DNA of 64,000 nucleotides from Oikopleura dioica (taxonomy: Eukaryota; Animalia; Chordata). Where the stretch lies: the NCBI GenBank assembly GCA_907165135.1, contig OU015566.1, positions 6,076,001-6,140,000 on the forward strand, in the 5' to 3' direction. The notes under the pieces are model-generated. The model made no database searches, had not been told where the DNA came from, and saw only the letters and a list, made by a program, of their open reading frames with translations. Of this stretch, positions 7,334 through 62,800 are shown one piece after another. The stretch's first letter is position 1. Every line of letters starts with the position of its first letter. A program made the translations under genes and the position numbers.

Positions 7334-7866
7334 AATACCAAATTGAAATACTAAGTAGCGGATTAGCTATTTCAAGCAATCCTGGAAAATGGAGATCGTC
7401 ACTCTTGACGGCCCTCTGAAGATGATTGTAAAAATCAGAGATGAGGATCGACAAGCTCAAAGGACAGCTATTGTCAAAACATCCAAAGTGTGTTCAACAA
7501 GCGCCGCTGAAAAGATACTCAATATCATATTTACCAAATATCCGCCAGCATTTTTATTTTTCGCCAATAATAAAAATAACCCTCAAAGCCCAGGGATTCC
7601 ACAACCGAAGCCCAAGCGTTGTCTTATTTGGAAAAGATGTCTTGGAAACGTGGCGGAGATGCGAAGATTGATTGCGGAACGAATGCCGAGGAGATATCTA
7701 AAATTATGATTAGCAACAAAATTTTAGATAGTTTCACGTTCAATACGTATCTGAATATCTTTTCGAAGCGAAAAATATACAAGTCTGCAAGCCAATAATT
7801 CAAGGGATTTCAATCGAAAACCAAGCGTCTAGCTTATTATTATCACAAGCCATTTTTAGGGTTATC

Positions 7867-7997
7867 CTGAGCACGGCAACCTGTGTAGAAAACCACGATT
7901 AAGATCTGAAAGGTTACGCCAGAATACAAAAATTGATTAGAATGGTTATTATGCGAAAATTTTTAAATGACCCTGACTCAGATTTAATTCACAGGTT
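7867..7997. mobile_element. Degenerate copy of the CTGGGCTCGGCAACC MITE family with an interrupted right TIR
   Basis: Left arm CTGAGCACGGCAACCTGTGTAGAAAACC; right arm GACCCTGACTCAG...CACAGGTT, then telomere-like repeats. Confidence 0.55.
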
Positions 7998-8909
7998 AGG
8001 GTTAGGGTTACGTGAACGAGGGGACGAGTACCCCCGTTCGCCGATTTCCTTGAACAAGGGTACCAGTATCCCCGTTCGCTCTTTTTCTCGAAAAATCAAG
8101 GAAGCATTTTACCTGGGGAACTCCGATGATCAACGAATCTGAGTGCCCTGGATTAGCAATAGAAGAACACATGCGATCAGTGCAAGAGAGGGACAGATAG
8201 ATCGAGTCATGTGACACTTGCGAGTTGAAAAATCCGGAAAAAACCCTACTGACCCGGTAATTAAAGGCCCGGAAATCCAATATGCCCAAGATGGCCCAGA
8301 TTCTACGAATTCTCAACTCGTGAATAGAAAAGGAAAAAAGATGCCATTCGCAACAATAACTCAATTAGCCACACTCAAACAGGAAGATTTAAATTTTATA
8401 TAAGAAGGCTCTGACGCTTTATGACTAATTTTTGCGTGCGTTTTTACGCTCGTTTGTGTTTATTGAAATCCTTGTTATGAGGCTCGCCGGAAGTGTTGCG
8501 TGAGATATTTCCCTTGATGATTTGGCCAATTTAGCATTATTAAACTTGCGAATCGGTGAAAACCAGCGCCGTAAGAATTTAGTCATACATTTCTAATTCT
8601 GAAGGTTAAGTTTGATTTACTGACTTATCGGGTACCCTCATTCATGATGGAAAGCAAACAAGGGTACGGTACCCTCATGACCGCATACCACCACCTGAAG
8701 AAGTCAATGCTTTGGTGCTGAAAGTAACCTTCACCGTTGAACAAATCTTATGTAGAGCTTACATTTTTAGAGTAGTCGGGGGCCCCGACTCGGGGGTAAT
8801 CATTCGAGCAGCCCCTAACCCTAATCCTAAACAAGGTGGCAAACGCCCCCAGGACTCCACAGCTTTGGCCTAAACCAGGGGGCTTCGACCCTAGTCCCTA
8901 AACCTAACC
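7994..8909. repeat. ~0.9-kb non-coding segment bounded by inverted telomere-like repeats
   Basis: GGTTAGGGTTAGGG at 7994-8007, CCCTAACCCTAATCCTAA at 8813-8830, CCCTAAACCTAACC at 8896-8909, and a GC-rich palindrome GTCGGGGGCCCCGAC at ~8774-8788. Confidence 0.4.
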
Positions 8910-35640: not shown

Positions 35641-35807
35641 CTGCGCTTTGCAACCTGTGTATAAAACCTGAGTCAGGATTTGAATATCTTAAATGAAAAG
35701 CTAAGCGGCTTCGCACGTAGATAAAAAAAGACTGTAATAGTAATATCGCGAAGCCGTAAGATCTTCAAATCCTGACTCAGGTTTAATACACAGGTTGCCG
35801 AGTCAAG
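35641..35807. mobile_element. Intergenic copy of the CTGGGCTCGGCAACC MITE family
   Basis: Inverted arms GCAACCTGTGTAT.AAACCTGAGTCAGGATTTGAA; TSD not recognisable. Confidence 0.75.
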
Positions 35808-49400: not shown

Positions 49401-52400
49401 AGTAGTTATCAACAAAAAGAAAGCCAATAAAAGCGTCGTTAATTTTACGAATGAATGGCGTTTACTTGAAAAACTACAGTTTCCACAATGCAGCTCGATT
49501 CTGCAAAGAACTGGCAATGAACAGACTGGAGGGCTTTGCCATTCAAGTCTTTCAAGGGATGAAGGCAAAAGGCTTCGAATATTTGACCTCGATCGTCGAC
49601 AAAGAAGGATATCGCCGCGTACCGTTGATCCGAATCGCCCAGCGAGCTGGTCTTTTTGAATTGCTCTCCCAAGATCTTGTGCAGCGTCAGCTCGATATTA
49701 TCTATGCTGGTGGATTAAAGAAGAGCTCTTCAAATTTCTTCAGCCAGTCGACAATAGGTATCTAATGCCAGCCAATTTATTCCCAAATGTGCGTTCTTTC
49801 AGTTTATATCCTTGGATTGGCGACGATGGGACTTTTTCCAGCAATTTTCTGCCCCGATTTCATCAAATTTGACAAAACAAAGTACTTTCTCAGGAACTAG
49901 GGTGGGCCAATTTACTAATCATAAGAGGCAAAATTGGAATTCGCTTGCCAATCAAAAGTCGATTCTGGTTGATCTTGGGGCAAGGGGTTCTTCGGCCAAT
50001 AAGAGTCCAGTATTTGCTCGATGAGCCAATAAATGAATATCTCTTTATAGTTTTGCCCACCCTAGGTCAGAAAGTTCTGGCGGGACATTTTCGGACCAGG
50101 CTATGTAACATTCGAAGGCGGTTCGCTCAAAAGATTCAACATTTCAACAACCTCCATGACCAAAACTACTTCAAAACACCGGCCGATTCAAAAGCAGTTC
50201 TCAATTTCCGAAGAGTCAAACACTTCTTCCAGCCCCGACGATTGCATCATCGTCTCCAAGGGCGAAAAAGTCAACCATTCCTTTTCCGACAAATTCCGCG
50301 ACTTCCTCTACCGCTGGCTCACCTGGAACTTTTCGACAAAAGTGATCATGCTCAACAACCTGATCACCGACTGCATCATTCTCTTCTTTCTCATGTACCT
50401 TGCCGTGGCGAAGCTCAGCTATCACTCGAACCAGTGGGACTTTGTTTTCATCGCGATCTTCGGTTGTCGGATTTTCCACCGGTTGCGGACTTGGTTTGCC
50501 AGAAAAATCTTCTTCGACTCTGAACACGCTTGGACAGTGCCAATTCGAATCGGTTTCGTCGAAAAAGTCAACATCTTCGCGATCTTGATTTCCATCCTTT
50601 TCATAACTACGAGATGGGAATTTGTCAATCAAACGCCTCGCTACGTTATGGGCCCCCTTCTTCAAGACGACGCGAGTTTTTACATTGGAAACTACACGAA
50701 AGACATTGAAACATTCCAAGCTGGGCTCGGCAAATTGACTAGAGAGCCTAGGTCAGGGTCTGAAAGAGCTAAAATGAAAAGCCGCGCAGCTTTGCTAATA
50801 TAATCATTGAAATCTATCAAAAATTCTGGCGAAGCGGCTTTTCTCATTTTAGTCTTTCAGACCCTGACTCAGGTTTTCTACTCAGGTTGCTAAGCCCAGA
50901 TTCCAAGGCTCCAATCAAAAGGCGGTTCGAGAAAAATCCGACTTTGTCATGGAGTTTTACAACGATTTTAAAAACAACGATACAAGATCGTTCAACTACT
51001 ACGAAAAACTGTACGATGGAATCAAATACATGCCCTTCCGTAGCCCTCAGAATTTCAACAACGCGATCAACAACTACTTTTTCGTCCTGCCGCCTTTTAT
51101 GGTCGGTTCTTTGTACAAAACTCCGCTTGGAAATTCGACTGTTGAAGATAGAGAGTGCAGGGGCAACATCACTCACAGAATGAGAAATAACAAAGAAGAC
51201 AAGGAAGAAGACTACCACTTTGCAGAGTGCTGCGAAAACAGGAATGTTAGCTGAAATTATTCACCAAGAAGTGTCTTTTTTTTGCCTAGCATTTTCAAGA
51301 TCGATTCGGACTCTTACCGACGGTCAAACGGTCAAAGATCAAGGAACGAATGTTGTCATCAAGCTGCTGAAATCATCAGAGAACGCTACAGTTCCAATCT
51401 GCTACTTTAGCAGAGTCAAGAATATTTCATATCTTTCATTTGTCTGGAACGTTGTTTTTCTAAATGAAATGCACTTCATAATGTTGCTCGAAAACAACCT
51501 CCGAAAGCATCAACATTATGATTTTCTTTTCAATTTTCAACTTGCTTCGATTCGCCCGTTTGTCCGTCTTTATCGGTCCTCTGATTTATGCTCTTTACAG
51601 GACTCTTTTCGACGTCCTCAAATTTGTGCCGATTTTTTTGCTCTTATTCCTCGCCTATGGAATCATTCAAAACAACCTTCTTTTTCCCAATCAACAGGTA
51701 ATTCTTCTCTAAATACAATGTTATAAGATGGCCATTTTTAGACAGAACGGGATGATGTTGCTTCTTGGGTTTTCACAGAATTTACGAATATCTTTAACCG
51801 GCCGTTTTTCCATGTTTTTGGAGAAATTTTCATCGCAGAAACAACTACTCATCGATACTACCACATCGAGGTCAGTTTTTTTCTTCGAAAATAATGCTAG
51901 AATTAAACCAAGGCGCCCTGCACGCATGCTTTCGGAGACATAAACTTGGAAGACAAAGTCCGCTGCCCAGAACGTAATGAAATTTCATCCTTTATCATGT
52001 CGGCCTATATGCTGGCTACGAATATTGTGATGGTGAATATGCTCATCGCCATGTTCAACGAAACGTATTTGAAGATGAAAAACGTAAGGACCAAAGGATT
52101 TCTTTTTAGAGCTTCTTTAGAACTCGAAATTGATCTGGGCGACAGACAGATACAAGTTCATTTTGGAAGAGTATCATTATTTCCCAAATATTTTTATTGG
52201 AGGAATTTTTCAATTTATCTTGTGCATCTGGTTCCTCATTTGCTTATTGATCCGATTCCCCGGTAAGTTTTTCAGAAGAAATTTTTCGTAATAAATTCAG
52301 TTTGGTTGGTCGTGAAAATAAAACGAAGAAAGGAAAATGCCAAGTCTCAAACAATTTTGTTTGACCAGCGCCTCGTCGGGCGAATTCTCCCAAGAAGGCC

Positions 52401-52450
52401 TGTTCATTCTGATCCTTTCGTTTTCCGAAGAAGGACGAAGGAATTTGTCA
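46480..52450 (+). CDS. TRPM-like cation channel (multi-exon; ends approximate), interrupted by two DNA transposons
   Basis: MHR4-like segments (LEYLFRAILGK; PLIRIAQRAG..LLSQDLVQRQLDIIYAG), S1-S3 in ORF 50156, S4-S5 (LLRFARLSVFIGPLIYALYRTLFDVLKF...LAYG) and S6 (AYMLATNIVMVNMLIAMFNETY). Confidence 0.8.
46534..48851. mobile_element. 2.3-kb non-autonomous hAT-type element
   Basis: TIR TAGGGTGAATTTACAAAAA..TCAACTTTT with long imperfect inverted arms; perfect 8-bp TSD AATATGAC (46526-46533 and 48852-48859). Confidence 0.88.
47055..48178. repeat. Minisatellite: 20 full units of 53-56 bp plus partial units, each with a GC-rich hairpin
   Basis: Unit TTAAGGG(G)CTTGACGGCCCTTCGGGCCGTCTCAGCCCCGTTCCTTGGTTTT(TT)AAT; units differ only in homopolymer length. 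Confidence 0.98.
50721..50899. mobile_element. Palindromic MITE (CTGGGCTCGGCAA family) inside TRP coding sequence
   Basis: TIRs CTGGGCTCGGCAA / TTGCTAAGCCCAG; perfect 8-bp TSD ATTCCAAG (50713-50720 and 50900-50907). Confidence 0.92.
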
Positions 52451-52785
52451 TAAGCGACGAAGACGGCCCAGAAGAAAATCCAGCTTTTGAAATATTACAC
52501 TAGAATATCAAATAAAAATGCAAGATATAATTCGCCTTCAATATATAAGACAAAGAACAAAGCCAACAGTACCGAGCTTTGAAAAATACCTAGAAAAAGT
52601 AGGTTTTTGAAGCTGAAAATTGTGTCATGGACCGTTTAAGTTGTCAAACAAAAGCCAATCTAATTGAATATATCTTTGAAAATAGCCTTTCACAACAAGC
52701 AAGTTCAACTTTGTTCAAATAATTGACAAGAGAAGTTTATTCGCGAATGTTGTAAATCGAAGATTTGAATACCGATAGGCCAACG

Positions 52786-53524
52786 ATGAAACTTGCTCTT
52801 TCTCTTTTTGCGCTTTCAAAAGCCAACCCATTAAATGAGAGGGTCTTTCGCGATGCCGTGGACAAAATTGCCCGTGAGAGCAGCAAGGACCGCGAGGATT
52901 TCGCTAGATTTGTCAACAATCGTGATGACACGTAAGATAGTTTCCTGATTTATCTTTGCTCATAAAGTTTTAACCGTTTTTCGACAAGTTTAGTCTTTTC
53001 GAGTTCGCTTGGGAATACTGCCATGAAGTTAACGAGCTCGAATTTGACGCAGGTCTTGACATTGATGAGCTTGCTCATTGTGGAACAGCTCTATGGGATG
53101 AGATCGGAGCTCTGATGTACGAAGACAAATATCCTCATTTAGGACAGGTTCTCTTCAGCCTCTGGGATGTAGCCGATTGGGATGGAAGCGGCTTGGTCGA
53201 CTTTGATGAATTCCGCTTCGCGGAAACCATGCTTGCCGGTGTTTACGCTCTTGTCGCTTTCGACCGACACGATCGCAACGGAGATCGAGATTTGGACCTT
53301 GACGAGGTTTCTGAGTTCGAACATGACCGTGAGAAAGAGAATTATTCATCTAGATTAGATATTTTCCAGTGATGCCCGAGGGCGAGGAGTTCGGTAATGA
53401 GAGAGCAAAAACCTTTCACGAACTCTGGGAAGAAGCAGAGCTGTTCGGCGGCTACGAGAAAACTTACATTCCCGAGGTTGCCCTCTTCTTCCTTGAACTC
53501 TGGCGAATGGTGTTTGACAATTAA
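52786..53524 (+). CDS. Secreted acidic EF-hand protein (3 exons)
   Basis: Signal peptide MKLALSLFALSKA; EF loops DWDGSGLVDFDEF and DRNGDRDLDLDEV. Confidence 0.75.
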
Positions 53525-53678
53525 GGCTATTCTTAAGAATTTTTCGACAATATCGAATAAAAAAACTTACATCTTATTCAAATTTTAAAGAGACTTTTTT
53601 ATTGATAATAAGGTGACAATTGGTTTCTAAAGAAAGTTGATCGTTGAGAAAAGAACTTTCGAAAAGCAAGCAATCAGT

Positions 53679-54168
53679 TTAGAGGAATTCGGGGAGTCCC
53701 TTGTAGACCTCAGCGGGGCACTTTGTGCCGACTTCGCAGACGTCACATTCTTCGCCATCCTTGAGGCACTTGGCGCAGGAAACGCAGTTGTAGACATCGT
53801 GGTCTTAAAAAAATATTCAAAAACGATGATACGGAGGCATTGTTTTTACCAGGATACTGAGTCTGCCAGTAGGCGAGACCGATGGATTTTTGGCCTTGAA
53901 CGAAGGCAAACTCTTCCTTAGTGCAGTGCTTGATGCACTCGCAAGCAGCGCAGCAGGTGATGCTGAAAGTGCAGCAAAAGCAGGGGGCTTTTTCGTCGGC
54001 GAAGACTGAGGACTCACCAACCAAGGCGTTGGCAGAGGCGGCAGCGACAATTGCAAGAAGGAGCTAAAATAATCATTTTAAAACAATAATTTTGGAGAAT
54101 TTTGGAGCTTTTTTTTGGATTAATCCATCAGATGTACTGTCAAAATTTTATCTGATTGTTACCTTCAT
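53679..54168 (-). CDS. Small secreted Cys-rich peptide (114 aa, 14 Cys, 3 exons)
   Basis: Exons 54163-54168, 53850-54063 and 53679-53803 sum to 345 nt with GT-AG introns. Signal peptide MKLLLAIVAAASA; TATA-like CATATATAAT upstream. Confidence 0.85.
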
Positions 54169-54988
54169 TTTTCCGATTTTTTCAATTAATGATATTTTCA
54201 GCAGATTTCAGCCGATTATATATGGGCGCGCATCTGCGTTTTCCTCCATACTGGCTCCACCTCTTTATGGGAATGCAAATTTAAATTTCGAAATATCATT
54301 GACATCGAAGAATGATACCGTATCAAATACTTTACGGCTTGGCAACCTCTGAAAAAAACCTGTGTCTGATTCAAAAAAGCTGACTTTAGAACCTAACTCA
54401 GACTTTCCACAGAGTTTCCTGTGCGCAGAGTAAGGATATCCGCCAAAAACATTGTCTAAATTGGTTCTATGAGGATAGAGTTTTATGAAAAATCAGCAAT
54501 TGCAATAAAATGCAACAAAAGTGCCAGAAAAGATCTGTTTAAAATCCCGTGTTACCCGCGTATGAGCCTCAAGGATCTCAAAATTTATGACACCGACAGG
54601 ATGGCTGTTTGCCTTCCTTATTGAAATTTTGAAAAGCTCATAAAGATGATAGAAAGTGCAAATGCCGCGCACGAATCTTGGCATCAATTTCGCCAAACAT
54701 GAAGTATGTTTTTTCGAGTTTCCAAGACCTCGCCCATAAGAGTCAATATTATCAATTCTTACCAAATGAACATTTGTAAAGGAAGGACACGTGTGGCGTC
54801 TTCATTGAAGACTCTTCAATACTGCATAATAACGTATAATATGATCATCTTATGGGAAAATTCCAACAGAAAAACCGAACTTTTACTCTTTGTTCTTCTT
54901 GTTGTGTCTTAAATACTGTGTGTCCATCTTATTTCAGCCAAGTCTCCTTATCAAGTGACTTTGAACTTGAGGTCATTTTGACTATTAA

Positions 54989-60684: not shown

Positions 60685-62800
60685 TTAAATTTTCGGTTTT
60701 ATCATTTTTTCTTGACTTTCTTCTTCTTCATTGTTGTCGCCATTGCTTGTCAGGCAGCAGTAAGATTTGAGTTTGATGAGCGAGAGAGGCGGCAAATTGG
60801 AGAAAATACCGGTGGAAATAAGAGTTGATGCAGCGATGATTCCAAGAGTAAAATACATGATGAAGAATTCACTTTTGAGCATGCACTCTGCTCTGAAAGG
60901 ATGAACAATCATCTGGTAGCTTCTGAAGTCGGATTCATGTAGCTTTTCTTCGAAGCAATTTCCTTCAATTTTGACTCGGTCTTTCAAAATCTGGAAAAAT
61001 ATTGAAACGTCGAATTTAATATTCTCTTACTGATAAGGAGCTGTCATCCACCCGTGCGCAAATGCTGTTGTTTATTTTGTTTTCCTGGTTGACTTGATCG
61101 ATGCAGAAGTCGATGATTAAATCGTTGAGAGAAATCATCAACGCGCATAAAACTTAAAAATAAAAAGTGGTTTTGACAAATTTCTTACTTAATGACAATT
61201 GAGTGATACCAAGCAAGATAGTCAATATTCCCTGAGCTACTGGGGCGCAAAAATATTCGGCTGCCTTTTGCTCAATAATTTTTTGATTTTCGGCGAAGTC
61301 GATGTTTTCCTTCACGCAGCCGGTCTTCAACAAAATGTTCAGTACCAGCATCATCATTTTGATAATCGTGGGTAGGTAGGTAATGAATGAGCAAAGGGGA
61401 GATATACAGGAGATGTATAGGTAGATTTCGATACAGGACCTGGGTTCGGCAACCTGTATAGAAAACCTGAGTCAGGGTTTTAAAAAGACGCGAGAATTTT
61501 GATTTTCAGACCCTGACTCAGGTAATCCAAAAGGTTGACGAGCCCATCACAGGACTTCCATGAACTAGAGTAACTCAGCTAGATTCTGAATTGATATTGC
61601 GAAAAAACTTACCAAGAAATCTTGAAAAGTAAAAATAAACAAGCATTACTTCGAAGGCCTTGAGAAAAAAGCTATCAAGAATTTTATGCTCGACAATTAA
61701 TTTGAATATTTTCGTCAACATCCTTCTCTCTCCGCTTCTCTCCGTTCTCATGAGCAGGAAAATCGTTATCATATGGCTAAGAAGCTTCAACGAGGCACAA
61801 ATTATCAGCGAAATCGAGACCCAATGAACAGGGTCAACTGCGAGGGTGGAACCAGTGTTGTACTCGTACCAGACAAAAACTGGGGGAAGAATTTCGATTA
61901 TTGGAATTAGCGCAAAAATCAAAGATGAAAATATGGACAGCTTTCCGTTGAATTTTGAGTTGACGATGACAAATGCCAAACTACAAGAAATAGTCGCGAT
62001 GAGAAAACACTGTTGAGTCCAAAAGTAAAAGGTTGTGTCGGGATCATATGGAATCATTTTGATTAGATTCAGTCTGTATCGCATTCTTTCCTCGGTCTCC
62101 TTTGCAAAAGATTTCTTGTCAAATATCGTTTTTGTAACTAGCCGTACAGTGAGCATGACAATGTTCATTTCTTGCTCATCAGAAATACTCTCTTCGGATG
62201 ATTCTCTCCGTTTCATGATTCGTCCATTTTCTCGTCCGAAGTAGCTTCTGCAGTTTCCATCAATTACTTCCCTATCACTTTGACCGTTACCATAAAAATC
62301 ACATATATTCGCCGCTTCATCATCAGTCACATTTATTTGCGCCGTTGTTTGGGAAGACGAATCCATGAACAAAAGTTCATCCCCGATTCCAAATTTGAAC
62401 TTCAGTATTGACTTCAATTCTTCTTCAAACTTTCAATCGGATATATATTTTAGAATAAAAATTCGAATTTACCCAACTGACTTCAATTTCTTCAGCTTGC
62501 CAGACAGTCTGAAATCGTGAAAGAACTCTGTTCATTCTCTCTGCTCTTGAGTCCGCTTGGAATGACCGAGCTAGAAGCAACAAAAGTAAAAATCGCATGA
62601 CTTCACTTGATTCTCTAAAAATGAGAATGACAGCTGACGAAACTCCAATTTGTTGAAGGTGTGTAGGCCGGTTACTCTACTGCCCTGATTTTCAAAAGCT
62701 GCAGCCGGAAATTCAGCGTTTCGATGACAATTGAAGTCTTGTTTGAATGATAACAACTTAATTATTCGGAACAAACCGAGTTGAAAGAGACCGATGAACA
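60685..62800 (-). CDS. Multi-pass membrane protein of unknown family (multi-exon, 5' end uncertain)
   Basis: ORFs 62571-62801, 61575-62417, 61154-61357 and 60685-60987 contain several hydrophobic segments and can be joined through short introns. Confidence 0.55.
61440..61547. mobile_element. Short copy of the CTGGGCTCGGCAACC MITE family
   Basis: Arms CTGGGTTCGGCAACC / GGTTGACGAGCCCAT; TSD TACAGGAC (61432-61439) / CACAGGAC (61548-61555), 7/8 match. Confidence 0.82.

Follow-up and report, generated by a model that had tools for sequence, protein, structure and literature searches.

The window, by which we mean the whole 64,000-nucleotide stretch of Oikopleura dioica DNA analyzed here, carries on its plus strand a gene for a TRPM-like channel, one large exon of which is interrupted by a palindromic MITE. 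The window is a 100% match to the O. dioica OKI2018_I69 chr1 gene g1602: the 827 residues of the public protein CAG5104850.1 map to it with zero mismatches, and this entry (Oidioi.mRNA.OKI2018_I69.chr1.g1602.t1.cds) was found in the 90% cluster of the ORF that terminates inside the element. The gene and the insertion comprise the following features, with positions counted from the first letter of the window:

49451-53521, plus strand: TRPM-like channel gene as annotated in O. dioica OKI2018_I69 (chr1 g1602.t1), whose annotated 3' end holds EF-hand exons
50071-50720, plus strand: upstream part of the interrupted exon
50713-50720, no strand assigned: left TSD copy, ATTCCAAG, 8 bp
50721-50899, no strand assigned: palindromic MITE of 179 bp, with the termini CTGGGC...GCCCAG
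50721-50766, no strand assigned: left inverted-repeat arm
50801-50803, plus strand: in-frame TAA met if the element is retained
50854-50899, no strand assigned: right inverted-repeat arm, differing from the family consensus at 3 of 46 positions
50900-50907, no strand assigned: right TSD copy, ATTCCAAG
50900-51241, plus strand: remainder of the interrupted exon, downstream of the element, which encodes a loop with many N-glycosylation motifs

We use "TRPM-like" as the safe wording for an assignment made by sequence similarity. The S6 exon of the window matches the structures of TRPM2/3/1/7/8 (E = 3e-5), and a more distant, largely intronless homologue (L003) matches TRPM2/1/5/3/8/4/7 from S4 to the TRP box (E = 2e-17). 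The Pfam Ion_trans model scored 21.2 bits, below its gathering cut-off of 25 (elsewhere 16.7 bits), and the N-terminal TRPM homology region (MHR) was not detected in the annotated protein, whose N-terminus is short. The insertion site lies just before S4, in a long loop that is 58 to 70% identical among homologues, compared with 98% for the S4-S5 exon, and that is probably extracellular.

The two TSD copies, 187 bp apart, are identical at 8 of 8 positions and directly abut the inverted-repeat arms, which are 76% complementary over 63 nt. A stretch of 195 nt covering the insertion folds into a single long hairpin, both as DNA (-49.5 kcal/mol, z -10) and as RNA (-98.3 kcal/mol, z -11). A BLAST search of the element against the window identified related copies at 35641-35805, 61440-61547, and 7867-7997 (three to four further copies in all), and the copy at 61440-61547 is flanked by an 8-bp repeat matching at 7 of 8 positions (TACAGGAC and CACAGGAC). 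Contigs that derive from other copies part from the window right after 50899, where their loose ends stop, and their flanks differ. In two DNA runs, contigs over the right arm reach a summed depth about 1,000-fold that of the flanks, showing that this MITE family is high-copy, with roughly a thousand members. The locus therefore combines terminal inverted repeats, an adjoining TSD, short non-coding dispersed copies, and an empty site in related sequence. This bears out the sequence-only reading of a MITE with a TSD, here of 8 bp, within a TRP exon. Only the length of the TSD would point to the hAT superfamily; 8-bp TSDs are also made by P, Merlin, and Zisupton elements and are thus not exclusive to hAT, and the usual hAT termini are (C/T)A(G/A)NG, of which CTGGGC is not the typical start. 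A search of the element for known RNA families returned a sub-threshold match to an miRNA hairpin only.

The element sits in coding sequence. If it is retained, the ORF that opens at 50156 terminates at the TAA at 50801-50803, which is where an unspliced reading had been said to stop. A deletion of 187 bp, corresponding to the element plus one TSD, fuses the frame-2 ORF 50066-50800 in frame with the frame-0 ORF 50868-51251, so that the flanking reading frames rejoin as had been claimed. We compared the site with two sequences that are homologues at 40 to 70% identity rather than alleles. One of them (L008, from a marine-metagenome contig) is a single ORF that aligns without gaps, with its residues up to 40 corresponding to the upstream piece and those from 41/42 corresponding to the downstream piece, and the more distant L003 keeps the same 22-residue spacing from YTK to FY. 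Given that both ORFs are unbroken and equally spaced, alignment to these homologues identifies the insertion site as exonic and ancestrally uninterrupted.

The same insertion at the same site is found in two independent wild metagenome contigs, L001 (Tara Oceans) and L002, whose haplotype and the window disagree at 39 of 655 exon positions. It is also present in two DNA runs, one with the same species label (X2) and one labeled as a different organism (X4), in which contigs span the junctions between element and exon and extend at least 45 nt into the element. No joint skipping the 187 bp was found among the joints listed for these two runs. Protein searches for an empty allele with the two coding pieces that flank the element retrieved ORFs with the filled site or more distant homologues only, and two scans of JGI metagenome contigs, targeting the gene flank and the family consensus respectively, gave no hits. 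Furthermore, an exon-anchored contig of X4 carries A at 50744 and G at 50750, which are the states of the family consensus, indicating that alleles of the element have already diverged. The sequence-only reading had described the locus as an intron gain in progress and had pointed to alleles lacking the insertion as a check. The insertion is present in all five samples (the window, L001, L002, X2, and X4), no empty allele appeared in the metagenome contigs or among the DNA-run joints listed, and the element arms differ between alleles, all of which speaks against that description.

The coding sequence flanking the element is under strong constraint. Between the window and the wild haplotypes, the upstream exons show 65 synonymous and 3 non-synonymous differences in total, divided into 37:2 for the interrupted exon (50072-50719, compared with L001), 24:1, and 4:0. 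For the interrupted exon this corresponds to a dS of 0.33 and a dN/dS of 0.012, and non-coding DNA nearby differs by 18 to 27%. Downstream, the exons between 50907 and 52262, which include S4 and S6, retain intact ORFs and TRPM motifs, and all six of the variants listed there are synonymous third-position changes (probability by chance, ~0.001). Selection on both sides of the element argues that it is spliced out. Given that the stop-bearing allele is the sole one in five samples and that the constraint is strong, removal of the stop from the mRNA is the best explanation.

The divergence between haplotypes is very high and mosaic, as seen at 49700-50720 in comparison with L001 and L002 and at 52911-54224 in comparison with two other wild contigs, L009 and L010. 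Both haplotypes are present in run X2, and the 44-nt intron at 49758-49801 shows zero differences from the wild haplotypes. Because the haplotypes are mosaic, some of the excess of synonymous changes may be older than the insertion. Within the element itself, the window and L001 differ by 3 substitutions and one 2-bp indel in ~140 nt (about 3%). We considered whether this low divergence, set against the dS of 0.33, points to a young insertion or to selection on the element, and we make no firm claim, since the haplotypes are mosaic and the left arm in X4 seems more different.

The sequence-only reading had proposed an intron running from a donor inside the left arm to the terminus of the element. 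We therefore list the candidate splice sites, with a slash marking the boundary between exon and intron in the motifs given here and below:

50752-50757, plus strand: candidate 5' splice site AG/GTCAGG in the left arm, identical in L001 and L002
50868-50872, plus strand: alternative in-frame acceptor CTCAG, giving a 121-nt intron and 22 additional residues
50895-50899, plus strand: element terminus CCCAG, candidate 3' splice site, giving a 148-nt intron and 13 additional residues
50982-50986, plus strand: acceptor ACAAG of the public gene model, giving a 235-nt intron (50752-50986)

Among GT-AG pairs that are in frame and free of stops, the element offers donors at 50752 (tag/GTCAGG) and 50758, and acceptors lie at 50872, 50899, and 50986. 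The proposed solution from 50752 to 50899 (148 nt, GT-AG) thus exists, its computed product contains exactly the 13-residue insert put forward earlier and no stops, and the second in-frame acceptor at 50872 is likewise present, with a stop-free intron of 121 nt. The donor at 50752 is also the one used by the public gene model g1602.t1, in which it is joined to an acceptor at 50986 rather than at 50899. The annotated donors of g1602 include GTCAGT, GTATCT, GTTTGT, and two GA donors; given that another intron of the gene starts with GTCAGT, GTCAGG is not an unusual donor here. We also attempted to derive genome-specific splice-site matrices from GT-AG candidates that join ORFs in the window, and these were dominated by false positives, with flat length distributions and flat matrices, so the annotated introns of the gene were used instead.

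Two features of the left arm change at the candidate donor. The 31 nt upstream of 50752 hold 8 differences from the family consensus, whereas the remaining 61 positions of the arms hold 3 (Fisher p = 0.006), and the family consensus CCTGA/GTCAGG reads CCTAG/GTCAGG in the exonic copy. In addition, the similarity to other MITE copies breaks exactly at 50752, which is compatible with a border between sequence that is kept and sequence that is spliced away, without proving one. As for the 3' end of the intron, an X4 contig covering 50872-51077 differs from the window at 12 of 206 nt, which is exon-level divergence and lies below the neutral-intron expectation for 50900-50986 (Poisson p = 0.007). 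This comparison mildly favors an acceptor no further downstream than 50899 over the one annotated at 50986.

The element is already intronic in the public annotation. The model g1602.t1 reads ETFQAGLGKLTREPR/SFNYY across its 235-nt GT-AG intron at 50752-50986, losing 27 ancestral residues and keeping 11 encoded by the element. The same model contains two GA-AG introns, of which the one at 49894-50070 agrees with the homologue P0002 and the one at 51242-51299 agrees with the homologues L005 and L003. Next to the first of these, a TAG at 50063-50065 is replaced by TAA in the wild haplotypes L001 and L002, and the GTCAG/ acceptor at 50070 is kept. AUGUSTUS is not known to take donors other than GT or GC unless they are hinted by RNA; given that the GA-AG introns of g1602.t1 would depend on such hints, transcripts probably exist on both sides of the element, and spliced RNA is inferred there from this use of hints. 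The OKI2018_I69 annotation was produced by AUGUSTUS with RNA-seq intron hints (PMC8008620). Elsewhere, the public model misses conserved frames: it reads 51301-51558 out of the conserved S4/S4-S5 frame (MIFFSIFNLLRFARL..., 98% identical in L005), and it passes directly from 52083 to 52989, leaving out the TRP-box exon at 52121-52177. Since the model is wrong in these places, its MITE intron may be an ab initio repair. A representative search for annotated full-length orthologues returned P0001 and P0002 only, and a search with residues 100-520 of P0006 returned none.

We propose that a non-autonomous MITE inserted into the large TRPM-like exon, in the loop just before S4, in the Okinawa lineage of O. 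dioica. The insertion carries an in-frame stop, and it would be tolerated because the spliceosome removes most of the element as a new intron beginning at the GT at 50752 in the left arm. The 3' splice site would be either the CCCAG of the element (50899, adding 13 residues) or the exonic ACAAG (50986, with 27 residues swapped for 11). We consider intronization of the element through the donor at 50752 somewhat probable, with the splicing and its sites being predicted. As to the acceptor, a junction to 50899 or 50872 is a tentative proposal, and a junction to 50986 appears doubtful.

An alternative is that the copy bearing the insertion is null or decaying, in which case translation stops at 50801-50803, the product lacks S4 to S6, and the gene is dispensable, for example, through paralogues. 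Besides the stop within the element, the RNA data are compatible with this idea, given that none of the RNA runs listed contains the stretch. Run X14 gave zero reads, and X13 gave 22 partial reads that are 90 to 95% alike and have loose ends resembling an L005-type homologue; the latter reads derive either from a paralogue or from a diverged lineage, and they reflect low expression of a related gene, so they are no test of the window allele. The failure to find another annotated full-length orthologue in our searches also fits a dispensable gene, as does the burial of the splice sites in a very stable hairpin, with the donor at 50752 and the acceptor at 50899 both base-paired in the structure of -98 kcal/mol. 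The same holds for the 3' EF-hand exons (52986-53521), which show 10 synonymous and 16 non-synonymous differences from the wild contigs L009 and L010 and thus a dN/dS of ~0.5, compared with 0.012 in the upstream exon; however, these exons may be a separate gene that the model fused to the channel, or a fast-evolving tail. A null state of a gene with a dN/dS of 0.012 would hardly be expected as the sole allele when a hyperdiverse species is sampled five times independently. Moreover, the downstream exons are intact with all of their listed variants synonymous, and the annotated GA-AG introns imply transcription, which together make a null allele unlikely in our view.

A further alternative, very unlikely in our analysis, is exact or near-exact removal of the element plus one TSD through non-canonical sites joined by the hairpin, which would restore the ancestral protein: the hairpin does juxtapose the element ends, O. 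dioica does tolerate non-GT donors, with ~11% of its introns being non-canonical (PMC8008620) and two GA-AG introns in g1602 itself, and MITE-derived non-canonical introns are described for Fritillaria (PMC11282704), but exact removal requires AT-AG or CT-AG ends, which are not among the G*-AG types known from O. dioica, none of the many more in-frame pairs obtained when G*-AG donors are allowed gives exact removal, and this solution is absent from the public model.

Removal of the element as an intron starting in its left arm has counterparts in other eukaryotes. Huff et al., in 2016, are said to have treated introners as transposon-derived spliceosomal introns. Introners and other transposon-derived introns have been found in Micromonas, Aureococcus, dinoflagellates, and others (Gozashti et al. 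2022, PMC9860276), and, as in these systems, the element studied here is a short non-autonomous transposon with TIRs and a TSD that lies in coding sequence unbroken in relatives and offers candidate splice sites of its own. In Aureococcus, the introners carry both splice sites and leave 4 bp plus an 8-bp TSD in the transcript, i.e., 12 nt or 4 residues (PMC9860276). The candidate described here would leave 31 nt plus the 8-bp TSD (39 nt, 13 residues), which follows the same logic, although the retained piece is much longer. The host also differs, being an animal and a chordate, and the intron here, like any intron role for many copies of the family, is putative; Oikopleura and tunicates are not mentioned in the text of PMC9860276.

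Another comparison is offered by Fritillaria borealis, also a larvacean tunicate. According to the summary of Henriet et al. 2019 in PMC11282704, this species has numerous MITE-derived introns at species-specific gene positions, and the TIR hairpin joins the intron ends. Both cases involve a MITE with hairpin-forming TIRs within a gene. In Fritillaria, the intron ends are mostly AG-AC or AG-AT and depend on a modified spliceosome (PMC11282704), in contrast to the canonical GT-AG candidates at our locus, which lie within the stem rather than at its base. For O. dioica itself, transposon insertion is listed as a source of new introns in the entry for Denoeud et al. 2010 in Table 1 of PMC3443670, and, as far as that entry goes, the cases share with ours the species and the proposed route of intron gain. 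A further comparison is with g1602.t1 itself (CAG5104850.1), which, like our proposal, makes the element intronic from the donor at 50752, uses the acceptor at 50986 instead of 50899, and misses conserved frames elsewhere.

Among animals, O. dioica is the textbook example of massive intron turnover, and where its new introns come from is still debated. We regard this locus as a clean but not unprecedented example of a transposon-made intron, with the element probably removed as an intron. The mechanism is already known from algae, dinoflagellates, and Fritillaria and has been hinted at for Oikopleura, and the intron is already part of the public model. The locus is nevertheless clean and datable, in that relatives display the exon in its ancestral state, both the element and its TSD are preserved intact, and selection on the host gene is strong. 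If the donor at 50752 is genuine, a high-copy MITE supplies a working chordate splice donor and may lengthen a channel loop or exchange some of its residues. A broader suggestion, which we consider quite unlikely, is that the whole MITE family is a true chordate introner, with a donor at element position 32 and an acceptor at the terminal CCCAG. Were this so, exonic insertions would leave 31 nt plus the 8-bp TSD, and these 39 nt, or 13 codons, would be frame-neutral in any phase; the family would then explain a share of the massive intron gain in Oikopleura dioica.

Further observations concern the surroundings of the insertion and other members of the family. Four homologues (L005 to L008) have a 45-nt phase-1 intron at the codon matching an N of the window (50994-50996), with GT-AG ends in L008 and GC-AG ends in L006. 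The window gene has none at this position, so that it and these homologues differ in intron presence 90 nt away from the MITE. On the minus strand, the copy at 61440-61547, whose TSD reads GTCCTGTG and GTCCTGTA (7 of 8 positions), sits just downstream of a perfect TTG/GTAAGT donor at ~61606-61611, and it may lie inside an intron of a minus-strand gene or be part of one. Finally, a degenerate MITE copy with a truncated right end occupies 7860-8015 of the window and has TTAGGG-type telomere-like repeats on both sides (TAGGGTTA on the left and TAGGGTTAGGGTTA on the right).
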